A stretch of 64,000 bases of DNA from Chlorokybus atmophyticus. Its lineage: Eukaryota; Plantae; Mesostigma and Chlorokybus algae. Below, piece by piece: positions 3,201-63,728 of the stretch. A program made the position numbers and the translations under genes. The stretch covers positions 199,115 through 263,114 of the forward strand of contig RHPI01002161.1 of assembly GCA_009103225.1 (NCBI GenBank). Reading direction: 5' to 3'. The notes beneath the pieces were generated by a model. That model had not been told where the DNA came from, ran no database searches, and saw only the letters and a list, made by a program, of their open reading frames with translations. How positions within the stretch are numbered: the first letter of the stretch is position 1; each line of letters begins with the position of its first letter.

Positions 3201-5455
3201 TACTGGAGGCCAGGCGAGGGGTGAAGGGCATGAGTGCAGGAGGGGGAGGGGGAGGAGTGAGTGGAGGAGGGGTGGAGAGGGTCAGAGGGAATGAGGAGAA
3301 GGGAGTGGAGAAGGTGGTTGAGAGGGGGGTGGCTGCTGCTCCTCCTTCAGATGTGTTGGATAAGTTGAAGAAACTGCAGCTCCAGGTGAGTGCATGGGTT
3401 GCTTAACCTCAGCATTAATTGCGAACCACGTACTCGCTGTAAGCGATTGCTTATGAAGGTACATGTATGTCGTCACTCCGGGGTTGTCATTGGGTGGGGT
3501 GCGTCCCTATCTTGTTCACTCTGTGCTGTATATATTGCATTGGATACATTGCAGTGCGCTTGACTGTATCACCCAACATTGCACACGCACTCACGGCCAA
3601 TGGAGTGCCTCACTCACTCATTCACTCACTCACTCACTCACTCGCTGACTGCACCATACGTTGTCATGCAATCTCTCTCACTCCCCTCACTCACTCTCAT
3701 TCTGATCCGATCGCAGGTTCAGCAGCGCGACAACGAGATCAGCATCCTCGTCTCCATGCTCAACAGCAAAAACAGCAGCGACCATCCCTCGCAGCAAGCA
3801 GGTCCCAAGCCTGGCCTTGGTCCCAGTTCCAACTCAGGTCCCGGGCTCGTCGTCCCTCCTAGCCTGGCCCCGCCCGGTCCCAGGATAGGCCAGGCGTCTG
3901 GGTGCGACCTGATCGCGAATGGGACCACGGATGCGCTCGTGGATGCGAGCTTGCTGGCTGACAGAAACAAGGCCTTTGAGATGTGAGTGTCATGATGCAT
4001 ATACAGACATGAATGTACGCGCGCGCACGTGTGGGCGTGTGCATGTTTGAATTTGCAAAATCTGTGTGTGCAGGTTTCGCAAGAGCTACCGGAAGAACGA
4101 GGCCATAGAAGAGAACAAGACTACCCTCAAAAGCAAATATGATGAAGCAAAGCAGCTTGGCGAAAACATAAACAAGTCACGTGAGGCAAGCACACTCATC
4201 CGTCACCATCGCTTCATTGTTCTGATCGTCACTCTCGCACGCATAACCAACACAACCACTAACACTTCCTTTGACCACAGTCGATCAACGCGTTGAAGCG
4301 GCGCGTCGAGCAGAGGCGAATGGCGCGGTCGGTCTCGCTGATATCCACGGGTGGGGCCGAGAGCTCCCCGCACGCTGCGAGGGAGGATTTGGAGGAGGCG
4401 CGCATGAAAGAGGAGATAGAGGCGGAGAAGGTGTGTGTGTATCTACGTGCGTGGGTGGGTGCGTGCGTGCGTTTTAATCTGGTTTGCGTGTGCGTGTGCG
4501 TGATGGTGTATGTGTAACTACCAATTGGTGCTCATGGTGTTGCTTGTTCTTGGTCAGGTTGTGTACAAAGAGGGTTTTGGGAGGCTGCGCGAGCTTAAGA
4601 GTGACATTGAGGGCCTGCACGCAATGCTTGAACACAGCAGAACACGGCTGCAGGTCAGTACCGATGTTGTTGAAAGACATGATATGATGCTAGTGGTGTG
4701 TCTGATGTTGACGTGTGTGGTTACAGGCGGACTTTGAACAGTGGCTGGGAATCATGTCGAGGCAGGCGCAGCCACAGCAGCAAGCACAACAAGCGCACGC
4801 ACAACAACAGGCACAAGTACAACAACGCCAACATGTTGCACCAAGCGCAGCATTCTCCGCATCTTCGCCCTCTTCTACCCCCAGTACAGTTGCAAGCACA
4901 CCCTCATCAAGCATCCCCTCTGCAAGCACACCCTCTTTCACTTACCCCAACACACCATCATCAACAACATCAAGCGCAATGAGGACTCCAAGCACGAACA
5001 CATCAGCGACAATGTCTGCGATATCGTCTTCGTTGTCGTTATCGTTATCAAGACCGCTACTAAGAGCAGTGAAGCAAGCGTGGGGAACCGAACAGCCGCC
5101 GACAACATCATTCCCAACGCCCACAACATCAATCCCAACACCCACACCATCCACATCAACCAGCATGAGCAGGAGCATGGACTACTACTCCACTGCTGGC
5201 AACAGTGCGGCAACGGGGTCAGACTCCACGCTGAAGCCGACCCAACAACACAGCTCGAGGCCACAATCAGCGCGAAGCACGGGTGGGGGAGGAGGCAAGA
5301 GTGCTGATGGGGTGTTATCAATGGCGGAGCAAAGAGCGTCAACCGTGTTGACTGGCAATGCTGAGGCTGATGCGGACATCCTGGCGTTCTACAAGGCAAG
5401 AGAGAGGCTGCTGATGATGCAGAAAGGGGGCACAACTGCGCCGCGTAAGGGATGA
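224..5455 (+). CDS. KIF6: Kinesin-9 family motor protein, KIF6-like (19 exons)
   Basis: Spliced exons give the motor motifs IEIYLRVRP, FAYGQTGSGKT (P-loop), SSRSH (switch I), DLAGSER (switch II), HVPYRNS and LGGNCKT. Later exons give NKAFEMFRKSY and the KIF6-type tail LTGNAEADADILAFYKAR. All 18 introns keep frame (14 GT-AG, 4 GC-AG). Stop TGA 5453-5455. Confidence 0.92.
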
Positions 5456-5763
5456 TGCATGTAGTCAACGTTGGGCCCCTTAGCTATGTATGTATCCCAT
5501 AACGCGACTTTGCGGTTGAGTGTGTCCATGTGCACAAGCGTATGTACAAAGTTAGAAGCGCTATGTGCGCGTATTGCGTGCACGAGCGCACAATCACATG
5601 GTCTATTTGCCAGATGCAACATCGGTACACGTATTGAGCTGATTAGCCACAAACTGCACACACAAGTGTTGAAAACGGTTTGAACGATGGCACAACGATC
5701 GCCAAAAGCGGTGCTCCAAGCACATCACGCGCATCCTACTCACTGCAAAGATTCAGGAAACAG

Positions 5764-7986: not shown

Positions 7987-8067
<81 letters not shown>

Positions 8068-9100
8068 NNNNNNNNNNNNNNNNNNNNNNNNNNNNNNNNN
8101 NNNNNNNNNNNNNNNNNNNNNNNNNNNNNNNNNNNNNNNNNNNNNNNNNNNNNNNNNNNNNNNNNNNNNNNNNNNNNNNNNNNNNNNNNNNNAGAGAGAG
8201 AGAGAGAGAGAGAGAGAGTGCGCGTGCTTCTTCTGCTCCACCTGCTTTGGGTGCTATCGGAGTTCAACGCAAAGACCGCCGCTCTTGGATAGCCCCACAC
8301 TCCAAGGTAGTGCTTGACAAAGTCAGGCACTGATGGTGCACACGTCGCGGAGTTAAGCAAGAAAGCAACAATCAACGACTGAGCACAGGCAGGGAAAAAG
8401 TCTCTCGCAGCAACAACGCCATGCATGTATTTACTAGCAGATTCATACCATACCATCCTCGGTGGCAGCCTCAGCGTTCAGCTCCGCCCACAGAGCTTCC
8501 AAACGCTGTCTGGCGGTCTTGTGGTCGGGCCACTGCGCCAGCTCGAGCGCGATGACGTCGTGCAGGGCATGCCACAACTGCCCGCACTGCGAGCAGACAT
8601 TGCAATGAGTAATTGCATGGCTTACTGACAAGACAGAAAGCAGCAGTCTGGATTGAAGCTATGAGAAGAAAGACTGTCAGCTGTACGTTACACTTGTGAA
8701 TAGCAATGGCAAAGCAGCAGGCAAGCAAGCATACCAAGCATACATGCAAAGCAAATAAGCAAGCAAGCAATGCAATCACACAGCCACCCAGCAGGCATGT
8801 ACGCAATCAAGCAGACCGAGAAAGCAGTCAAAGATAGCAAGCAAACAAGCTGAACGCAGACTCAAGCAAACAAGCAATCAAGGACATCAGGCAAGCTGTC
8901 ACTTAAAGCCACAAATTCAATGAAGAATAACAACCAAGTAGCGCATGCAGCTCATGATCAGGCTCCATGCTCTCTCTCACCGCGTCGGGGTTGTCGAACT
9001 TGGCCAGGCGGAGAAGCTCTGGGGTAAGGGCAGCGCTGACACCCGCCGCCTCCGCCGCCGCGCAAACCCACGCTATGCCGTCCCTAGCGCTGCTACCCAT
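5764..9100 (-). CDS. TEDC1: Tubulin epsilon and delta complex protein 1 (TEDC1/C14orf80)-like, multi-exon
   Basis: Spliced peptides PELLRLAKFDNPDA|CGQLWHAL, FVKHYLGVWGYPRAAVFAL, SR|EILLALGWLFSR and HMEVFWRWM match, from memory and in order, human TEDC1 blocks (PEIFRRAKFDRPEA, LCSQGYPRLAL, SRELLLALSWLLAR, FWRWM). The last exon (..VLNNEELLVIGL*, TGA 5764-5766) is less certain. Confidence 0.75.
7991..8218. repeat. (AG)n microsatellite containing an assembly gap (N 8068-8192), in a TEDC1 intron
   Basis: Directly visible. Confidence 0.97.
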
Positions 9101-9841
9101 GCCTGCCTTTCACTTCAAATCTGCTGTGCTCGCAGTGGTAGTTTCTAACAAGCTTGTCGCCGCCGTTGCCGCCGTTGCTGCCGTCGTTGGCCTCGTCGTC
9201 CTTTAGCTCGTCGTTGTTGTTGTGGTCATCGTCGTCGCTCTCCTCGTCGTCGTCAGCGGCCTGCTCATCACTTGCCTGCCCCAAGCCAGCCATCAGCCAT
9301 GGCCAGCAAGCATTGGTGCGTGCGTGTTGTTTGAAGGGAAGATTGTCTTTGCTATTGCTGCTTGGATGAACTGGCGTTGACAGCCAGTTGCTTGTTGATA
9401 GCCGTTGCTCGTGGCTATTATGGCTAGCCTTGTAGGCAGCGATTCAATAGCAGCTTGCTAACGGTCACAGCTGGGCTGTTTGACTCGAAGCAGCGGTAAT
9501 TGTAGTCGATGTCGTCGTTGTAGTCGACATGTTCCCTGTGCTGTGTTGTCAACTATGTTGGCTCTATGCGGTTAACACAAGCAAGTACCAGTGTCCAGCT
9601 TGTCAAGCTTGAGACTGGCACGCAGTAAGGGCCCGGCTAGGGCCTCTTGACATGCGTTTGCTTACACAGAGGGTTGTCAATAGCCAATCAGGCAACCAGC
9701 ACGGGTGCTTCTCAAGTTACTAGTCATGTACTTGAGCAGAGTAGTATGACGCTGCCAGCTGCAGTTGTTAATACACAAGTACTTTGTTTGTTGTCGTTCA
9801 CGACCTAATTGTAGCTCAACACTCCTTTGTACTTTCTGCAG

Positions 9842-10886
9842 TTTTACTGATATTGCGGCCGGCGAGGCGCACCATAGCCCCGCTGAGATCCGCCACGGAG
9901 CGTGCATCGTCAAGGGCGGCAAAGTTCTCGCCGTCGGCCACAATCGCCCTGGCCACGTTGCTGCCGCAGGCCTCGCAGTCCCGTCAATCCACGCTGAGAT
10001 GGTAAGCTGAATGCGTGCGCGTCCATGTGCGTGCATGCGTGCCTGCACGCGCGTGTATATGTATACGTGTGTGTGGGTGCTAGCATTGACAGCTTCACAA
10101 CTGAGTCTACGTTAGTACAGGAATTTGTACTCGTGACTGTTATTGTACACGCATATGTGTACACGTACGTGTGTAAGCATCTACTGTGCGTAAGCATGTA
10201 TATATGTTTGTATGAACGTATGTTCCTATTTCGGTATGCGTTTGGCGTGTGTAGCGGGTGATGTTATTGCTTATGTGATGTTGGTTGCAGGATGCTTTAC
10301 TTCGAGTCGGGCTGCATCGGCAGCAGCGTGTATGGTGGAGCGGTGCGGCGGCGCGCGCTTTCTCCAGCTGCCTGACCCGGCGGTGTGAAAAAGCTGTCCA
10401 ACGAAAAGAAGAAGAACAACGCACACAACTGCAACAACAACGATAAGACAATCAGCAACAAAGGCGTGCTGCTACAGCCGCAAAGCCGTCTCAACCACAC
10501 AGCATGCAAGAGTACCACATCAACCAAGGACTACGAAAACCACAAACCAAGCTGGTAAATTTTTTGCCTTAACACTTACATGATGTGGCAGTCGACATAT
10601 TCTGTATGCAAGTTTGAATTGTGCTTGTTTTCCGGTTCATTCTCAGGACAACAAAGCAAGGTGCGCCGTGGGGTGCAGACTTGTATGTCGTGCGCCTTGG
10701 ACGTGATGGAGGCTTGCTCGGTTCGGTGAGTGCACGTTTGAGGTGATGGTCGAGGTTCTCTTAAATATGCAAGCAGATGAATAACTTTTGTGGCAGAAAC
10801 CTTGCACCTGCTGTGTGGCGCTCATGCGTATCCATGGGATCAAACGCGTATTCTATAGCACACCAGAAGGGTTACGCCAGGACATG
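9842..10886 (+). CDS. Zn-dependent cytidine/dCMP-deaminase-fold protein (ends uncertain; middle exon has a frame/stop problem)
   Basis: Exons encode RHGACIVKGGKVLAVGHN...SIHAEM|DALLR, then GADLYVVRLGRDGGLLGS|KPCTCCVALMRIHGIKRVFYST, i.e. the HAE and PCxxC motifs of the deaminase superfamily. Start codon and last exon not resolved. Confidence 0.75.
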
Positions 10887-11644
10887 GTGAGCACATATGC
10901 ACTAGCACTCTTGTGATCTTACATGTTGCAATGGTGTTTCAGCTTGTGTCATTGCTCCTGTGATTGGTGTGCGTATGTGGAGTGCGGGTAACGATGAAAT
11001 GGCCTGCGCGGTCGCGTGTGTCATGTAAGCAACTGTGTGCATGCAGGTTATAAGCATGTGCGCAGAGTTGAGTTCAGGCGTGAAGCGGTTGCTGCAGTCG
11101 CCATGTGGCAAGGATGCATTGCCGTCTAGCATACTGTAGACCCTGCATGAGGGCAACATCATGTAGTAGAATAGTTGTAGTGATCCAGCATTGGTTTCTA
11201 GCTTGTCAGCTCATCGGGACTTGAAAACTGTAGCTGGAACTGGAACACAGCATCCTTCAAAAATTATCCAGTGTTCATGGCCGCTTGCATGGGGTTTGTG
11301 TGTCTTTAGCAACCAAGGAAAGTTAGACTCGTAGTAGAAGAAGAAGGACAACAAGTGGTAGATACTGCTGTGTAATTTACACAAATTATGGCTGCTTGCA
11401 TGGAGTCTGTATGTGTTTATCAAACAAGGAGTTGAAGACTGGCAGTAGTAGGAAAAGGCCAACAAGTAATCAGAGCTGCTTTGTGATTTACAAGTTACAG
11501 GTTACCTGTCGGGATGTGGACTCCAGTTTTCCTGCAGCTTTTGCACAGTGACAAGCGGCCAACTCGCTGCGGCCTGACTCGAGTCGCAGCGACACAAAAT
11601 TAATGCCCGACTTACGGCCTTGAAAGGCCAAATGGCAGAGGCGT

Positions 11645-11718
11645 TGGTCCAGACAGGTCTCGAACCTGTGACCTTCGCGTTATTAGCACGACGCTCTAAC
11701 CAGCTGAGCTACAAGACC
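11645..11718 (-). tRNA. tRNA-Ile (anticodon AAT)
   Basis: Reverse complement GGTCTTGTAGCTCAGCTGGTTAGAGCGTCGTGCTAATAACGCGAAGGTCACAGGTTCGAGACCTGTCTGGACCA folds as a cloverleaf: anticodon loop CT-AAT-AA, T-loop TTCGAGA, one U-U mismatch in the acceptor stem, no intron. Confidence 0.96.
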
Positions 11719-12412
11719 AATTGATGTCCACACACTAAAATATACATAAATATACCCTTTACAATAAACCATGTCATAATTGTTATCGATGAGCCCTGTG
11801 TACTTGGTGAACCCCGGTTCACATGCAGTGGTCAGTGACTTTGGCGGGAGGGCCTGTAGCACTGATGTGACGTGAGGTGGTGAGCTGCGGCGTACAGGAC
11901 GGCGGCGTTGAGGGCGGCGACGTGGCCGCGCTAATTAGGCGTCCTAGCAAGGCGAGTCACCGCTCATTTCAAGTTGTGCAACGCCATGCAAGTCAAGACG
12001 GCGATAACCGGCTGCCCCATTTCAAGAGAGGAAGCAATGGCACTGCTCGCCACCTCTTTGCGGTAAAGCTGTCGTTGGTTTCTAGCATGTGCGCGTCGAT
12101 GGCATTTCATCATACGTAGATTGCTGAAGCAACAGTACCAATGGTAGCTTTATCGTTGTCAGTGACCGGCTTGCTATGGATGTTGACGTAACTGTGTATG
12201 GTATATTACCTTTCTGTCGTCATTCGCAGCATCAACAACAGCAGCCTGAAGTTGTTGCTGAGGTCTTAATTGTCGCATTGACTTTATAACTGCAACCCCA
12301 ACAACAGTAGGCAGACAATTGCTGTTGCTCAGGTTAACGTTATTGAGGATAGCAACAACGGCAGCAGTGAGGTAAGGTCCACAACAGCAACCCTGGCAAC
12401 AGGGTGGAGAAA

Positions 12413-16796: not shown

Positions 16797-19700
16797 ATGG
16801 TGCGGCACAGGGCGCTATTGGCTCTGCTGCGCCGTCCCTGCACGCCCGTTGCTGCTGGCGGCTGGCACAGTGCTTATGGCGTGCTGAGCTCATGTTTTCA
16901 GGTGCTGCTCCTTGGTGCATGTGGTACTAGACTGTTTGATCTGCTTGACTTCGCTTGCACCTTACGGCGCAAATGTTACAGTGTTGGAGCAACCAGCTTG
17001 TCAGCTCAGAGTACGTTGTTGAAGCATGCAGGCTGTGTCAACTCTGCATGCCATCTACTCGGTTTGTGACATGCAGCAGCACCCCTGCTGTTGTTTGAAG
17101 AACAATGTAGTTGAGACGTGTAGTCAATGCAAATTGTTAGTGAGCTGCATGGTGAAGGAAACCATTGCACACGCATGATGGACTGCACACAGCTTGCAAC
17201 TGTACACAGTGATGTTATTGGCTTCATGCTGGACGTATAATAATCAGCAGCAAAGTGCCCATACGGTGAGAACAGCAGTATAAGCAACGACCAAGTACAC
17301 ATGCTGCTACTTGAATCGTGCTCTGATTATCACATGGTACTGTGCTTGTTGACAGCATATGGTTTCACTCTACTACTTGCATGCAGGCACACACAAACAG
17401 TCAGTCTCACATTGCAAACTGTAACAGGAAATCGTGGGGGTGCCAGTATGGGGCATCAAACCCGCTCAGTTTCGCGCTTATGCCGCCATGGCAGCCACAG
17501 CGGTGCGTTGTTGCTCTTTCCGAAACCTCTTGTTGATGGAAGGCAGTATTTGACAGACTAACGCGCACTTACTTTCAGGAGTCTCCTGACAATTACCTCC
17601 ATAGGCTACGTAACATTGGCATATCTGCTCACATTGACTCGGGCAAAACAACTTTGACGGAGCGCGTGCTTTTCTACACCGGACGAATCCATGAGATTCA
17701 CGAGGTTTGTGGCCGTGTGTTATGTAACCGTATTTATTTACATGATACTTCATTATCGCAGAGGCGTTGTACTCATGAATAACTCAATCAGGTCAGGGGT
17801 AGGGATGGGGTGGGGGCAAAGATGGACTCAATGGAACTGGAGAGGGAAAAGGGTATCACCATACAGTCGGCTGCAACGTATTGCAGTTGGGGCGACCATC
17901 AGATTAACATCATTGACACACCAGGTTAGTAGTTCGTTTGATCAAACAATATTGTTGTGGAAGGCACATTGCGTGGTGTATGACATGCCTGTCTGCAGGC
18001 CATGTCGATTTCACCATTGAGGTTGAAAGGGCTTTGCGCGTGCTGGATGGCGCCGTGTTGGTGTTGTGCAGCGTTGGCGGGGTTCAGTCGCAAAGCATAA
18101 CGGTCGATAGGCAGATGCGTAGGTATGCGGTACCTCGGCTCGCTTTCATTAACAAGCTGGATCGCACTGGCGCCGACCCTTGGAAAGTCGTGAGCCAAGT
18201 GCGTGCCAAGCTAAAGCAACATTGCGCAGCCGTCCAGGTATGAAGTGCATGTTGTCAATTGGTTATCATCATGTATGCCTGTAGCCATGACCGATGTGAT
18301 GCTCACGCAGTGCATGTGCCTTCTTGCATAGGTGCCTATTGGCCTTGAGACCGACCTTGTTGGGTTGGTTGACCTTGTTGATATGCGAGCCTACTACTAC
18401 GAAGGTGCCAACGGGTACGGTTCACAGCTGTGACTTCTGGTCATGTCAGCAATGAAAACTGCAATACATGCTATATGGCGTGCAAGCCAATATGTAACTG
18501 CGCGTGCGCAGGGAGAAGATTCGACAGGCTGAAATTCCTGACAATTTGCACGCGTTCTGTGAAGAAAAGCGTAAAGAACTTATTGAGACCGTGTCTGAGG
18601 TTGATGATACATTGGCAGAAATCTTCTTAAACGACGAGCCCATCACAGAGCAAGTGCTGCAGGTATTGAGTAACATTGCTGCTTTTGCTTGAGTTGCTCT
18701 AAGAGGTGCAAGAGCAGCTTACATGCAGTGCATGGTTATTGATGACGTGCACGAGTAGCTCAATTACAATACTTGTGCAGGCTGCTGTTCGGCGTGCCAC
18801 GCTGTCACTGGCGTTTATGCCTGTATTCATGGGCTCCGCATTCAAGAACAAGGGCGTGCAGTCTCTTCTTGATGGCGTCGTCGAGTACCTTCCATGTGAG
18901 TAGTAAAGATTAATAAACAGTAGTGAGCAAGCCACTCCTCTGCAAGTACTTACACCGTATGCCTTGCAACCTCATCCTCTCTTCTCTGCAGGTCCTCTGG
19001 AGGTGAAGAACCATGCTCTTAATCAGGCCAATAACGAGGAGCAGGTGGAGCTACACAAGGATCCCAGCGCACCGCTTGTCGCCCTGGCTTTCAAGCTTGA
19101 AGAAGGACGGTTCGGCCAGCTTACCTACATGAGGATTTACGACGGCACTCTGAGTAGGGGAGAACCCGTTTTCAATGTCAATAACAACAAGAAGATAAAG
19201 GTATGGGCAGAGAGACAGTTGGCTGATTGCTGTATTGTGTATTTATATTATGACTGCTTCAATATCCAACTATACTGATCTGTGTTAGGTACCAAGGCTG
19301 GTGCGCATGCACGCGGATGACATGGAGGACATCCAGGAGGCTCGTGCCGGGGAGATTGTTGCCATGTTTGGTGTGGACTGCGCGTCCGGCGACACATTTA
19401 CAGATGGAACCGTGCAGTACACTATGACCTCCATGAACGTGCCTGAACCTGTGATGTCGCTGGCCATTTCTCCCGCCTCCAAAGACGTGTCACCACAGGT
19501 ATGACATTAGCCCTGATTCTGATCTTAAGCCACCCGTTGACCCGCAAGTCCTGCTGTTGTAGCTAGGGTGTGTGGCCTTGTGATTGACACATGCGATTGC
19601 AGTTTTCCAAGGCATTGAACCGGTTTGTGAAAGAAGACCCGACATTCCGGGTGAGCGTAGATCCAGAGAGTGGACAGACCATCATCTCCGGCATGGGTGA

Positions 19701-21056
19701 ACTGCATTTGGATATCTATGTGGAGCGCATGCGGCGCGAATACAAGGTGTGTTCGTACACGTGTGCATGTGAGCGCAAAACATGCATTGCGATTGTTATG
19801 TTCAGCGCTGGGGCTATTCGCTTGTTTGCTTGCAGCTGTGGATGTACTGTGTCAACGCTTGCCAAACATGCTTGTGCCAAAGGTAAACACAGAGGTGGGT
19901 AAACCGCAAGTCAACTTCAGGGAGACCATCACCCAGTCGGCCACTTATGACTACCTGCACAAAAAGCAGAGCGGTGGTCAGGGCCAGTACGGTCGTGTCG
20001 CCGGGTAAGATTCACAGCGTGTTTACACTTGATGAATAGTACACAGTACTTGACTGGTGCTTTGGCTTAAGTTGCTTGCGCATATTTGTATGCACTCATA
20101 TGCAGGTACATTGAGCCATTGCCAGAGGACAGCCCTGAGAAATTTGTGTTTGAAAACGCCATCATCGGGAACGTGATCCCGCCCACATACATCACAGCTG
20201 TGGAGAAAGGCTTCAAGGAGGCCATCAACAGCGGCTCACTGATCGGTTACCCTGTGGAAGGAGTCAGGGTGGTTTTGAATGACGGCGCTACGCACACTGT
20301 CGATTCCAGCGAGCTGGCGTTCAAGCTTGCTTCCATTTACGCGTTCCGCCAGGTAAGCATGTTACATCCTGCTGGGTTGCAGTGCACCTGTCTGGTACAC
20401 CTTGCATCGTAGAGTGACAGGTTGGTTATGAACTTTCATGACACTGGGCTTGTGGTACCTTGATTGTTGTTCAGGCTTATAACAGTGCCAAGCCAGTGAT
20501 CTTGGAACCAGTCATGGATGTCGAGATCAAGGCACCGCAGGAGTTTCAAGGCACGATCATTGGCAACATCAACAGGCGGAAGGGTGTTATTCTTGGCAGT
20601 GACACTGCTGGTGACGACGTCACAATCCAAGCGCAGGTTCGTATGTTTGCTTTGTCCTTCGCTTATCTTGGCGCTGGTGTTATCCACGCATGATGGCGTC
20701 ATTGGTCACAGTCATATGTAGAGCCAAGCATTCCATTGCTGCTATCACAATAGTCACCTGGTACCAAAAAACCCTTGTTATACACTACAACACTACAATA
20801 CCCATACTAAACACATCACATATGTTTCTGCCAAGTGTGCACAGCACGATTTAGTCCGCTTGTCTACGGCGCCTTACCTTGACAATTGCTGCAGGTACCA
20901 CTGAATCAAATGTTTGGTTATTCGACGGATTTGCGATCGATGACGCAAGGCAAGGGCGAGTTCACGATGGAGTACGCCTGCCACATGCGCGTCTCACAGG
21001 ATGTCCAGGCAGAGCTTGTTGACACCCACAAGCACAGGAGAGGAGGGCAACATTGA
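16797..21056 (+). CDS. GFM1: Mitochondrial elongation factor G (EF-G1), multi-exon
   Basis: [122 protein letters not shown]-terminus is Arg/Leu-rich and presequence-like. Stop TGA 21054-21056; 5' exon structure uncertain. Confidence 0.95.
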
Positions 21057-56458: not shown

Positions 56459-58464
56459 GATCCAGCCTTGGTTGGTTAAGTAACGTTACACAAACAGTTT
56501 GCGTACACAAGGGCCTTATGCGGTACACTTTGTTTATTTTGTTGTTGCGTCCGCACATTGGTGCTCGATCTTGCACATGTGTGCTTGTGCTACTCACTCG
56601 GGTGCGATTACCGCGTCCGCTGCCTGCGTCTTGTAGCACCTCTACACCCTTACGGTGCTCTCGTCATTCACTGTTTGCATGCAAGCTTATCTGGCATGCA
56701 CTTAAGCTGGCAATTGCACTTTGCGAGCTCCGAGCTGAGTTAGTGGTTGCAATGCGAAATCTCCTTTTACTTGGTTTAAGGAAACGATTATATGAAAATA
56801 CGCATGACTGTGTGCATGGCCCCAAGCATCTTTGTCCAAAATCTCGTTAACGTGCAACTCACTCCACAGCATTCAGTCATCACTAAAGGTGCTAGTGTGC
56901 CTGGGTTGCCTCGGTGTGTTTTTTTGTGCGCAGGTCGCACAGCGTTTCAAGAGCCACAAAATGGCTGGGAGCATGCCGAGCAAGGACCGCCAAAGGTTTG
57001 AGGCGAGGGAACTTTGTAATAGCATTGACAGACCTCATTCCGGATTCTTCCTCCGCCTAAGTTGAAAAGTTGGTCGACAACAATCAACTACCTACAGTGC
57101 ACTACTCACCAGTGTCTTTGGCCTTACAGCGAACCCAGCTTTGACAGTGAGGGAAATATGGCTACCACCTTGGGCAACCGCAGTGGCAACAACAGCAGCA
57201 ACGTCAAGAAGTTGATCTTTATTGGAGCAGCAGACTCCATCATGGCATGAGAAACACGATTATGCAGCGACGTCATTACGCGGGGTTGATGTTGCATATG
57301 GCTTACTTACTTTTGCCATTGGCGAGGGGATAGAAAAGACGGCCATGTGTGTGCGTGCATGCCACTTACAGTGTGCGTATGAGTGCGCATCCATACAACT
57401 CTCAGATTCATTTACATAATTGACACCAATTCACATAGCCGTGAATACGACTGCAAGGAAACAGCTTGGTTCAAACTCGTATGTTGATAACATGTGTGCA
57501 ACAGCAACCGCTGAGTATGAGGCTAAAGACACAATTGATTTAAACTTGTAGTTAACGTTTGGTAACTTGCGTGTAGTTAAAAATGCACACTGCGTCAAGC
57601 TAACATTATCAAGTTGCAGTGCAGCATAACAAAATGCATTGCTTGCTCAGTGTCATATACAAATTGTTGACCTGAAAAATAATGAACCATGTTCTTTACT
57701 TCAAGACGTCATGTGCAAGTATTGAAATCTTAACCAAGTTGCAAACCTAGCACACGCTTTTGTTTGGACTAAGCATGTGCTGACATTGTGTCACTATTTT
57801 TTATGATGATCAAAAGAAACAGATCGATAAGAAATTACAAGCTCTTTTAGGAGCTTATTAACCAAGCAATTGTGCTTTATACAATGTATGTGTGTGTTTT
57901 TATGGTAATGTCATCGTACAAACTTGCCTGTAAGCCGGTACAGATGCTTCACAAAACAAATGACTTTAATATTACGTAAGTTGCATGCATGCATGATAAG
58001 CATGCACCGATTATTTACTCAAGAAAGGATCCTCAACAAGTTTATGCTATTAAACTTTCCTTTACGCAATACAAACATTCTACACATGACGAGAAGAGTG
58101 CGAATTACCTTTAACAACCCTCGTTCTTGTTCCCATTCTTATTATGCTCTGCTCCCCTTGAATGTCACGACATGCACTTGCCTTGATTTAACATGCAGCA
58201 GTATCACCTTTATGCATGCCGAATGTGCAAGAAAATGGCAATGCCGAGTATATATAGGTATTTCTACGCGGGTGCTTGTGTCAGCAAGAGATTCCGCCTT
58301 CTCCTTGAATCTCTCTGACACAGGAATCAGTGTCGAGGGATTCCTCCTCCGCCAGTCCAATAAGAAGGAAGCACGCCGCTGCGCTCTGAAGTACAAACGC
58401 AGCGCACACACACACGCAGAGACGGAGAGAGAAAGAGAGAGAGAGAGACTTTGCCCACATCGTG

Positions 58465-60675
58465 ATGGGCACGGATGAAGGGGCGGAGGGGTGCAGCAAC
58501 AGCGTTGTCGTTGTCGTTGACAACAACAACGACACAAACAACAACGACATGCTGACAACGCACGACCATCTCAGCAGCGCCAGCCAACCCCAGGCGCCTG
58601 CAGGTGACAACAGCGACAACATCTACGCTGGCCAGGCCGCCGCTTCCAGCGGGAAGGACGAGGGCGAAGACACTAGTGAGAGCAAGCACAAGGTGGGACT
58701 GCATATGCACAGCTGCAGCATAATTGCACGCACAGCCACCCACGCACCCACCCACCCACATGCCTGCAGGCACAATCGTTGCAGCAGACAGTGCATTGCA
58801 CGACCTATGCCTTGCTGAGCCTCCTGTCATGTGGCTGACAGAAGCCGTTTTTTGGTAATATTGTGGTCATAACACAGTCCCAAGTTGACATTGCAATCTT
58901 CCACAAGTTTGTCATAGGGTGAACCAATTGTTAAAGCAAAGAATCTTGCTACATGTATGCATTTGTCATGGGGAATTGCATTTTCTCAAGTGGTGACTTG
59001 GTACTGCCATGCTGACTGCAATTGAATTCAGCTGCATGCGAAGTCAATGCTCAAAGCGTGCTGAGCTCTGACACCCACACCCACCCACACACACATGCGT
59101 GCAGGCCAACTCCCTCCCTTGCCGCATATGCCTTGGTGTGGATCTTGAAGGGTGCGCACCCGCCTCGCTGATGCCGCACGCCGCGATTCAGTCCCTGCAG
59201 GTAAGTGAAGAGCTGTTGTTGTTGTTGTTGTTGCCAAGTGGATGTGTACACGACAAACATTCGCACACGCACATGCACACATACAGGAGGAAGGGCTGGA
59301 CCTGCGTCACTTCATGGCGTGCGGGCCGCACTGCGCCAAGCGAGCGGACGAGTGCGCTACAAGCCCTACACAGCTGAGGTGAGTAGTGTGTGTGCGTGAG
59401 TGTGTGAGTGCATATGGCACTGGGAGGCAGAATTGCTTGTGTGCTTGCATGCAGTACATGTACGCACACGTGCAGCCCTGGTGTGTGCGTACACTCCAAG
59501 GCTGGCGCACGTGCATGCATGTGTGTCCCTTGTTCATTGCAAGCGCACATATACGCACACATGTGTACTTGTGTTCACATGCATACACACAGGTGCGGTT
59601 GCCGTGGCGGCATGGCGGTTGCTCACTACGTGTGCGCGCTGGGCTGGCTCGCCAAGCGGAAGACACACAAGTGCGAGATATGTGGACAGATAGTTGCCAG
59701 CATCCGCGCAGCCGATATAACGCTGTTCGCTTCAGCAAGCAAGAGTGGGAGTAACCACAACATTGCACCCAACACTAGTCATCACAACCAGCTGCCTCCC
59801 GTCGCAGAAGAAGCCATCCACCTTGATGTCATCAACAACAACCATGCTCAACCGCATCCTGCGGCATACAGGTGCTGGTTGTAGTGTGGTGTGGGTGTGG
59901 ATGGGTGTATACATGTGCGCGTGCGTGTGTGTGTATGTAATATGCCCATTTTGCAGTCTTCGCTCCCACAGTGATTGAATAGACTTTCCCCAAATGCAGC
60001 CTGAAAGCTTTTGGTATACGCGCCCGGGAGTTGGCCTTGCCCTGCATCCTCTTCATTTTGTATGAGGGCGGGTTGTTCACTGTAGCTGGATGGCTCCTCA
60101 GATGCTGGTCATCGGTAAGCAGCTGCATGTGGGGGTTGCAACCACATGCACGAGCACATATGCTCGCACGCTTGCCAACGTGCATAGCCCAGCATGATGC
60201 AGAGAGACCAACTGCATGTACACTTGCTTACTGAGATTATTGTTTCGGCAGTTGCATGAGCCCAAGAAGGCTATCATCGTCGCGGCGTCCCTGCTTGGCC
60301 TGCACATCATCTGCCTCTGCATCATTCTGGTGGGTGCATGCTAGCATCCATCTTTTATGGGCGTTTTCTTTCATCTCAATGCCAGCACAACGCACTACAT
60401 CTGTATGCACGTATCCATACAATTCTTATGTAAACATGCGTGCGTGCTCAAGCCCCTTCTATCTGTCCTCCATCCAGATTGCAGCCATGGCACACAAGTA
60501 CTTCCCCTACATACGCAACAATAAGTACAAGGTGGGACTTGTGTGGTGCCTCACGCCCCTGTGCCTAGCGGGCCTGCTGTTACTATTCGCGCCTAGCGGC
60601 AAATACTGCGGGCCTAAACCGGGGTCGCCACCGAGTAGTAGCAGTAACGACGCCGCATTTATGCTTATGTTTTGA
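58465..60675 (+). CDS. RING-CH (RINGv/MARCH-like) membrane E3 ligase, copy B (7 exons, 3 TM segments)
   Basis: Same exon structure as copy A: MGTDEGAEG...SKHK|ANSLPCRIC...LQ|EEGLDLRHFM...LR|CGCRGGMAVAHYVCALGWLAKRKTHKCEIC...|SLKAFG...|LHEPKKAII...|IAAMAHKYFP...MF*. Confidence 0.82.
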
Positions 60676-61262: not shown

Positions 61263-62474
61263 AAATACTACAATATTCACACCACTGCGGCAGCGGTCAA
61301 AGGACGCCATTGTCATCACACGAACGGCCGGGCCTCAGCTAGGCTATGTGCATCCGAGTCGCGAGTAACGAGAACGCGTAAATCAGGCATTGGCATCACG
61401 CCTGAAGGGGAAAGCTCAGATAGCAAAGCTGGGCTACAAGTAGCGTGTCTTCTTGCCTTATTCCGCCACGCATGTGTTTGCGAGTGCATTGTGTGTTGCA
61501 ACAACTTGAACATTCACACCTGCACACTGCTGCAGCGCTAGGGGTTGAGTTGCCTTCTTCATTCTTCATTCTTTTACTCATAAACCGCTGACAGTAGATA
61601 ACTATCAAGACAGTTAGAGCATGTTAAATACGAAATTGTATTGTATAACGAGTTTATGGATAGTGTACGAAAGCATCCATTACATTGCGACACTATCTCC
61701 TTCAGCGAAAAGAATTCTTCTCCTACAACATGACTGCCTCAACCTTGTGCGTTTTTGTTAGGGGGCACCCTGCATACCATGCAACATATTGCATGACATA
61801 ATGTGCTCAGTGACTTCTTCTGCTAAATAGGCAGGGAAGAAATAGTTGTACTACTGTGAACTTGACGGCTCCACACCATCCATAATGATGACGCCTAGCT
61901 GTGTTCAGCACTTAAAGATGCTACAAGCCTTTTTGTTACCAGCAATGCATTGCTTCATGCATAGGCCTATCAGTCGGCACGGTAGGAATGTAATGATGTC
62001 GACTCATTATGAATGACTTAATTGTTTGCATCAACAATTACATGGATGAGCCTCATTTGCACTAACGGGTCAAGGTTCTATGCTCCGGGCATGGATGCGT
62101 TTACATTGCGCACAGCCAACGCCAGTGCCATTTGACTAATGCAACCGCTCAAAACCCTTGCAAGGGAACGCCTAATGCTTCACGTAAACAATCGCTCTTA
62201 CAATTATCATCAAGATGTGTAGCGTCTTTCACGCACTGTGCATGAATGCGTCGCCGTTGCATGCAGAACTAAATGCTAGCGGCAAGCAATATGGACTGCG
62301 TGTCACATGCGATTTATGATTCATAAGTAGCCATTGAACGATCAATGCAAACACATGCAACCGCGGGTTGTTGATTGGATACTGATTAATTCAAGACTAG
62401 ATGATATGTGCATGGTACGCGGGAGCCTCTTTTGTGTCATATAATGTATGGTGCGCGTGTGTGTGGTGGTTACA

Positions 62475-62563
<89 letters not shown>
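62475..62563. repeat. Poly-G run of about 89 nt
   Basis: Directly visible; length may be a sequencing artefact. Confidence 0.85.
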
Positions 62564-63728
62564 CGTGTGCGTGTGTGCGCATATAATGCTTTTTATTTCA
62601 TGAACGCCCTGCATGCAACCAACAAACCAATGAGGTTAATCAAGGGAGGGTTTGCGGCGTTAATTACTAACCTTTATATAATGAGGATGTAACGTACGTG
62701 CTGATATGTATGTTACGTAATTCATGTATGCAGGTGTTTACTTCGCATGATATCTTGTGCATGCTATACAACGCAGTCATATAATTAACTAACCAACAAT
62801 GCCAATTGCATGCATGTCAATAACACATCGCATGACTATCATTCGTGCTACTAACATGAGAGCAAACTGTTCTCACACACCAATGAGTGACCCCGCCAAG
62901 AGCACGAGATAGCACACGATAGACAATATGCTTCTATTGAGGTTAGACAACATCACATCATACAGCCGCCTACCTAGCTTGGTTGCACGGTAAACCTTTC
63001 ACCCTCCTCAACAAGCGATCTTACTCAATAAGGACATGCTGCATATGGTAAGACAGAGGAGCGGCGGGTGACGGACGTGACAGACATATGCGTATGCGTC
63101 GTGCTGCACGTACCACCTTTGGTAAGATAAGTGGAAAATGGCTATTGTAGGACATGCCTGGTGCATGCACCGTTGAACGAACTCGCCTGTCTAAACGAAC
63201 GATGCAACATGTCTCTCTAGCCTAGGTGTGTGGAGACAGATGCACACACTCAATGCAAATGCTGCCTAAGGGGGGGTGTCACCAAGCCAGCATCATCTGA
63301 CGCTTGTTGGGAAAAGGACAAAATTTTTACCATGCTTGTGTGTGGTTATGAGTTGACAGTTTCCCACCCACACGGACATTGTGTAGCGTAGCCTACAGTC
63401 AAAGGAATCCAGCGTGTGCAGTAGGCTGCACACAAAGAGAAAGGTTTACTGGAATGAGCATCATATACCCTTACGCTGGACATGTACATATAAGGCAAGT
63501 GGGTGGGGGCCCCACATGTGTTATGCATGCCAAAGCACTTCCGGTTATCGACATATGAGTTATTGCCGAAAACAGGCACGGTGCATGTGCGTGTCTTTAC
63601 CGTTACCCCCACACAAAGGTTGTGTTGTTGCACAAGGGGCAACACGTGCTTCCAAACTACGTGTGTGCAGGCGTAGTGGTGATTTTGTCGTTACCATATT
63701 TAGCGGCCCAGACTAGCGCTGCCCACAC

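Follow-up and report, generated by a model that had tools for sequence, protein, structure and literature searches.

The gene studied here, a putative deaminase in nuclear DNA of Chlorokybus strain CCAC 0220 (now named C. melkonianii), raises the question of how its HAE half and its PCxxC half can be translated as one protein. Other species of Chlorokybus separated about 24-76 Ma ago (PMC8611356); RNA-seq data listed in that paper are ERR364371, BioSample SAMEA2242428 (CCAC 0220) and SAMN18221334 (SAG 2609), and genomic reads have the BioSample SAMN10351691. The gene is located in a stretch of 64,000 nucleotides that is referred to as the window. The frame in which exon 2 continues the HAE helix from 10291 (DALLRVG..., frame A) contains a single TAA at 10444-10446 and is otherwise open to 10554. 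The +1 frame (frame B) is interrupted by a TGA at 10373-10375, after which no stop occurs from 10376 up to the GT at 10555, and only this frame joins the good acceptor at 10646 (ttctcag/G; slashes mark splice junctions). The sequence TGT GAA AAA G is found at 10384-10393, and AAG acceptors are found at 10656 and 10660. A preliminary description of this region, whose coordinates all hold on translation and frame checks, had proposed a +1 frameshift, readthrough or U-to-C editing of the TAA, an ordinary intron, or a recent nonsense mutation or sequencing error.

Exons were read by eye and then checked by translation on the forward strand. The probable first coding exon (9299-9315) consists of an ATG plus 14 nt, ends in phase 2 and is followed by the donor TTG/GTGCGT at 9316; the N-terminus MASKHC of a published model, P0001, maps to these positions, and the phase suits the acceptor at 9841. 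Exon 1 (9842-10001) covers the N-terminal helix, the first strands and the HAE zinc and catalytic motif, with HAEM encoded at its end (9990-10001) and aligned to the invariant HAE of the clade, and its donor is ATG/GTAAGC at 10002. It matches the Pfam family PF00383 over profile positions 17-58 (E=6e-4) with 20 bits, the gathering cut-off being 25, and is also matched by relatives in tblastn searches. Exon 2 follows the AG at 10289-10290, a strong acceptor (10290) by the local weight matrix, and would in the preferred model comprise 10291-10382 in frame A, carrying on the HAE helix (DALLRVG) before a GC-rich coding stretch. Its residues A3, L4 and G8 after HAEM agree with the family consensus HAE..ALR..G. 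Exon 3 (10647-10725) encodes strand 3 of the fold, GADLYVVRLGRDG, is supported by tblastn and ends at the donor TCG/GTGAGT at 10726. Exon 4 (10797-10886; donor ATG/GTGAGC at 10887) encodes the PCxxC zinc motif (KPCTCC...) together with the helix and strand that come after it, and is 64% identical to the relative P0039 over 22 aa (tblastn). The last exon (11047-11139) has 30 codons plus TAG, is in phase after exon 4 and is shared with P0001.

Relatives of the protein were sought among 1.84 billion cluster representatives, a library that stands for about 15 billion proteins. The sole near-identical protein in this library is P0001, the EukProt/JGI model Chrsp134S02116 listed under "Chlorokybus atmophyticus", and a word search with the exon-1 frame or P0001 as query returned no further Chlorokybus-derived protein; looking up P0001 by exact match yielded no contig. 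Searching all representatives with exon 1 resulted in weak but specific relatives, and a family of 14 proteins (alignment A1) was seeded by one of them, P0031. The family consensus is HGAVLVKGG ... HAE..ALR..G ... KGA.LYVVR..K.G....SKPCP.C ... GVKRV.YT, and the relatives P0031 and P0025 pass PF00383 with 41.5 and 44.3 bits. Another strong match in the large search, P0002, was rejected as repetitive junk, and a PDB search with exon 1 alone was uninformative.

The family HMM was run against the locus one exon at a time. Exon 1 matches HMM positions 24-80 (43.5 bits), exon 3 positions 92-106 (13.0 bits) and exon 4 positions 111-135 (27.1 bits); the last exon gave no match in this exon-by-exon run. 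HAEM and KGADLY are separated by just 11 match positions of the HMM. For 10383-10554, no reading obtains a score with the family HMM, tblastn with nine relatives matches nothing, and MAFFT could not place the short pieces of exon 2.

Judged by its sequence, the gene is a member of a clade of small stand-alone CMP/dCMP-type zinc deaminases. This clade is little studied and also has members in amoebae and among small proteins of microbes or viruses. Its nearest known counterparts are the phage dCMP deaminases (PHROG 174; PDB 4p9c from cyanophage S-TIM5), with which it has HAE, PCxxC and the order of secondary structures in common; the clade profile matches 4p9c with E=2e-15, and clade members match phrog_174 with E=1e-14 to 6e-26. 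However, 4p9c lacks the approximately 10 extra residues (R..K.G....S) that the clade has between strand 3 and PCxxC, and in the Chlorokybus member the loop that separates the HAE helix from strand 3 is longer. Clade members fall under every equivalog cut-off of NCBIfam. Their score of 22 bits, compared with 219 for ComEB, sets them apart from dCMP deaminase proper of the DCTD, T4 cd or ComEB type.

If the synthesis of the full-length enzyme depended on recoding, a break between HAE and LYVVR might recur in homologs, and the preliminary description had named homologs with one continuous frame as evidence to the contrary. In all 14 aligned family members, HAE and PCxxC lie in one continuous frame. 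In the two intron-bearing metagenome relatives, L002 and L004, the halves are joined through canonical introns. The loop between the HAE helix and strand 3 varies in length, with 15 residues in L002, 24 in L004, 15-32 among intact members and 15 to about 65 across relatives, and P0037 has a low-complexity insert of 12 residues in the same loop. Going by these sequences, there is no recoding site common to the relatives.

A break that is similar on the surface occurs in a paralog in Balamuthia mandrillaris (L001:5300-6000; GCA_031835245.2, contig JAVKOQ020000454.1), for which the annotation has two genes, of 105 aa and 177 aa. Its HAE half stops at a TGA (5541-5543) just after the HAE helix, and its DLFVV/PCxxC half is in the +1 frame behind a purine-rich, T-poor run in which 5 of 184 nt are T. 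The frames would be joined by a 52-nt GT-AG intron (5528-5579), which covers the only T-containing part of this run, and a charged loop of about 58 residues would result. Thus, both genes belong to the same clade and have halves in different frames, a T-poor low-complexity run and an in-frame stop. However, the run in Balamuthia consists mainly of purines and not of A and C, the break is located elsewhere and the organism is unrelated. For the latter two reasons the Balamuthia break is considered a parallel and not a conserved feature, and such inserts in relatives suggest that this loop tolerates low-complexity sequence.

The selection of splice sites was based on local rules. A weight matrix was built from 13 confident introns and scored by leave-one-out, although this is a small sample: nine introns of an elongation factor G (EF-G) gene (17.7-20.9 kb), identified by peptide continuity, and four of the deaminase gene. 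The EF-G gene, of organellar type, covers 17537-21053 (+) of the window and has degenerate donors (GTTTGT, GTATTG, GTTCGT) and one AAG acceptor; its introns are a useful local training set. Splice matrices from two unsupervised EM runs were not used, since they had moved towards motifs that were TG-rich or resembled coding sequence. The 13 introns have 27-38% T, an AT-skew of -0.28 to +0.02 and a GC content of 38-50%. Local donors are degenerate, with GTTTGT, GTATGG, GTGTGT and GTTCGT beside GTRAGY, but G at -1 and G at +5 are each present in 12 of the 13. The acceptors are CAG in 11 cases, TAG in one and AAG in one. True sites score 3.7-9.8 bits as donors and 0.1-13 bits as acceptors.

Following these rules, an ordinary intron at 10383-10646 (264 nt, phase 2; donor GCG/GTGTGA, acceptor ttctcag/G) is the preferred explanation. 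Its donor has both conserved G positions and scores 4.0 bits, a GTGTGT donor is in use in the EF-G gene of the same window, and its acceptor at 10646 scores 5.1 bits. Exon 2 would end at 10382, and the intron would remove the A/C-rich stretch together with the TAA. Frame A would then be joined directly to the frame of GADLYVVRL, and neither frameshift, readthrough nor editing would be required. The existence of one intron that keeps the frame is weak evidence since such solutions are plentiful: there are eight GT..AG solutions with a single intron, of which 10383-10646 is the best, and more than 80 with two, including 10330-10477 plus 10555-10646. What favors 10383-10646 is that the frame is kept without a stop, that both signals are within the range of true sites and that the boundary falls at the end of an exon-like GC-rich stretch. 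The sequence 10335-10382 has 77% GC compared with 38-50% in the 13 introns, and the change in composition coincides precisely with the GT of 10383. The intron is further favored by the relatives, which match only exons 1, 3 and 4, by the lack of any scoring reading of 10383-10554, by the unbroken frame of all 14 family members and by the canonical introns of L002 and L004. The homologies of the exons, the arithmetic of the reading frames, the scores of the splice sites and the boundary in composition are observed directly; that 10383 is the donor actually used is inferred. The preliminary description had listed an ordinary intron among its models, and the tests point to this form of it.

Spliced in this way, the locus would be an intact nuclear gene with five introns, encoding a deaminase with some 176 residues. 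About 42 of these would form the loop that links the HAE helix to strand 3, a length inside the range of the relatives. We assign this reading a probability of roughly 0.55. An ordinary intron is put ahead because of the strong prior for splicing compared with a rare frameshift lesion, moderated by the odd composition of the removed sequence.

This composition is one objection. The disputed low-complexity stretch (10384-10554), which contains the frame-A TAA and an A5 run at 10389-10393, is A/C-rich and has only 10% T and an AT-skew of +0.63. This is far outside the 13 known introns, in which the highest AT-skew of 94 windows of 100 nt is +0.25. In contrast, the 92-nt tail at 10555-10646 is T-rich (41% T, AT-skew -0.31), resembles the known local introns and starts with a second donor-like site, CTG/GTAAAT. 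This site scores 5.9 bits, the 95th percentile of all GTs, and the stretch ends exactly at it. The contrast in A/C composition with local introns that the preliminary description had reported is therefore real and strong. Its impression that 10380-10554 looks exonic stands only in part: the stretch is unlike the local introns, but with a GC content of 0.47 it is also unlike the known exons (0.51-0.64).

Further evidence against the intron comes from the coding properties of frame B, which fits both the donor at 10555 and exon 3. Its GC3 is 0.70 compared with 0.35 and 0.36 in the other frames, and is still 0.65 once tandem codons are masked (P=0.017). In the seed codon model, frame B scores +6.5, while every known intron is negative in all frames, and both the positive score and the frame-B periodicity start at about 10385. 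In addition, the published, partly transcript-informed annotation retains 10394-10554 as a coding exon. The seed version of the codon model is the only one trusted, because the extended training set took up A/C-rich noncoding ORFs, and the model is weak on short exons, with exons 4 and 5 of the deaminase scoring about 0. Elsewhere in the window, T-poor A/C-rich tracts with long open frames and period-3 GC are found at 4738-5304 (+), 58390-58815 (+) and 62400-62597 (-); their translations are runs of His, Thr, Asn and Pro unlike real proteins, and they mislead self-trained codon models.

These coding properties could be explained if exon 2 extended over 10291-10554 and included a low-complexity loop insert that is, or recently was, translated in frame B, with a one-base lesion within 10376-10443. 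The lesion would most simply be one extra A in the A5 run. It could be a true mutation in the cultured strain, and thus a young pseudogene, perhaps rescued by a cryptic donor at 10383, or an indel from assembly or gap closing. This explanation is less probable, but it is a serious rival: the flanking splice sites at 10290, 10555 and 10646 are all good, the frame-B signal begins right at about 10385, and the stretch is not intron-like. The same loop also has low-complexity inserts in other eukaryotes, namely the 12 residues of P0037 and, if spliced, the insert of Balamuthia. Among the mutations and errors considered in the preliminary description, the serious rival is a one-base indel and not a point nonsense change.

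Several findings weigh against a lesion. The rest of the gene is intact, including both motifs and all splice sites, and the stretch is matched by no relative. An in-range, in-phase donor placed exactly at the compositional boundary would, by our estimate, be a coincidence of roughly 1-2%. This coincidence at the 5' edge and that of a good donor at the 3' edge of the stretch roughly cancel. Moreover, the period-3 signal can come from a decayed simple repeat of AAC type. At most one mismatch separates 31 of the 57 frame-B codons from AAC, and the same period-3 amplitude is observed in 3 of 29 other A/C-rich windows. Tandem Repeats Finder reported just a weak 9-nt array in the stretch, and there is no second copy of it within the window. 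That the frames of the stretch are open is mostly a consequence of its scarcity of T. Over all three frames it contains 2 stops, whereas 5.9 would be expected going by mononucleotide shuffles (P=0.028), and one or more frames are open in a third of the shuffled sequences.

For the variant in which the lesion is a sequencing or assembly error, the approximately 775x coverage with Illumina/BGISEQ reads makes an error in a 5-base run unlikely. At 7990-8220 of the window, a long (GA)n microsatellite is broken by an assembly gap of 125 N; the region was hence scaffolded or gap-closed, which bears on the chance of local assembly errors. Should the stretch be coding and carry a one-base lesion, the locus would represent either a pseudogene of very recent origin or an error of the assembly, which is equally ordinary.

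Both the good donor at 10555 and the frame-B signal would also be accounted for by other canonical splicing, in which a short intron leads from frame A to frame B, followed by a frame-B cassette exon ending at 10554 and then by an intron at 10555-10646. Candidates for the first intron are 10330-10393 (64 nt), 10330-10477 and 10383-10455. The frame would be kept without stops, the donor at 10330 (3.8 bits) has the hexamer GTATGG used in the EF-G gene, the acceptor at 10477 scores 2.8 bits, and a branch-like motif, CTGAC, is located 19 nt before 10393. However, the acceptors at 10393 (-3.3 bits) and 10455 (-0.3 bits) are at or below the bottom of the true range, and the donor at 10330 has a T at -1. 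The first introns of these arrangements would either include the stretch with 77% GC or have little T, and neither is true of any of the 13 known introns. With the acceptor at 10455 or 10477, the strongest frame-B signal (10385-10443) would fall inside the intron. A cassette exon is therefore considered improbable. Among the remaining sites, the donor at 10335 was rejected for its score of 0.4 bits, the donor at 10343 because it suits only the poor acceptor at 10660, and the acceptors at 10660 (-2.3 bits) and 10656 (-11.4 bits, the 3rd percentile of all AGs) on score.

Programmed recoding was the most far-reaching of the earlier proposals. It would involve either a +1 shift, at A AAA G (10389-10393) or at the frame-A stop CGA TAA G (10441-10447, antizyme-like), or readthrough or editing of the TAA at 10444 followed by the acceptor at 10656. 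In its favor, frames A and B are both open over 10376-10443, this overlap ends at the stop as in known +1 sites, and the splice sites flanking the long exon are good. As in +1 frameshifting of the antizyme or Ty type, a zero-frame TAA ends the region from which the +1 frame leads to the rest of the protein. Those systems differ in having what is missing in Chlorokybus, namely conservation, a stimulatory structure and a slow codon at the A-run, and here an intron suffices. The break is found in no homolog, no RNA structure was detected downstream at 10394-10520 (z=+1.5), and the codon after AAA is an ordinary GCT. The codon signal would place the switch near 10385, about 55 nt upstream of the TAA. 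Transcriptional slippage would need a longer A run to be efficient, and translation terminates efficiently at a TAA that is followed by G.

Programmed recoding as a whole is accordingly very unlikely. This also applies to its specific form in which the full 264-nt exon 2 is present in the mRNA and a ribosomal +1 shift yields the full-length deaminase, a proposal that nothing in the present results supports and to which we give hardly any credence. If it were true, frameshift efficiency would set the enzyme output, and such a system would, to our knowledge, be without precedent both among streptophyte algae and among deaminases. Of the forms of recoding, readthrough or editing has the lowest likelihood and is the weakest of the earlier models, since it needs the acceptor at 10656 with its score far below the true range and the translation of 10384-10443 in frame A, the frame with the poorest codon score.

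Returning to the intron at 10383-10646, the GT at 10555 may act as an alternative donor. It is located 172 nt (3n+1) downstream of 10383, so that an mRNA resulting from its use would have a premature stop. This arrangement resembles unproductive splicing coupled to NMD through alternative 5' sites: the donor-like sites at 10383 and 10555 bound a 172-nt stretch, whose inclusion would bring the premature TAA into frame A. Regulation of this kind would be purely conjectural for the locus.

The practical outcome is a corrected gene structure for a locus that most likely encodes an intact deaminase. The published model Chrsp134S02116 (P0001, 180 aa; 9299-11139 of the window, forward strand) omits the HAE codons and the whole PCxxC exon. 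Its donor at 9983 (-2.4 bits) and its acceptor at 10393 score below all 13 confident local sites. It is an artifact of forcing an open frame and should be replaced. Scans of this genome call for caution: with degenerate donors, and with every frame kept open by low-complexity DNA poor in T, an apparent frame break is cheaply explained.

The surroundings of the gene show some further features. At 9291-9301, the proposed deaminase ATG (9299) and the ATG of a divergent acidic ORF on the minus strand (9093-9293) are only bases apart around CCATGG, so at least one of these start assignments is doubtful or the 5' ends overlap. The 3' flank contains two tandem copies of a 105-nt unit (11277-11492; 74% identical, spacing 111 nt). 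A tRNA-Ile gene with anticodon AAT (11643-11719) is encoded on the opposite strand, roughly 500 nt beyond the stop codon of the deaminase.
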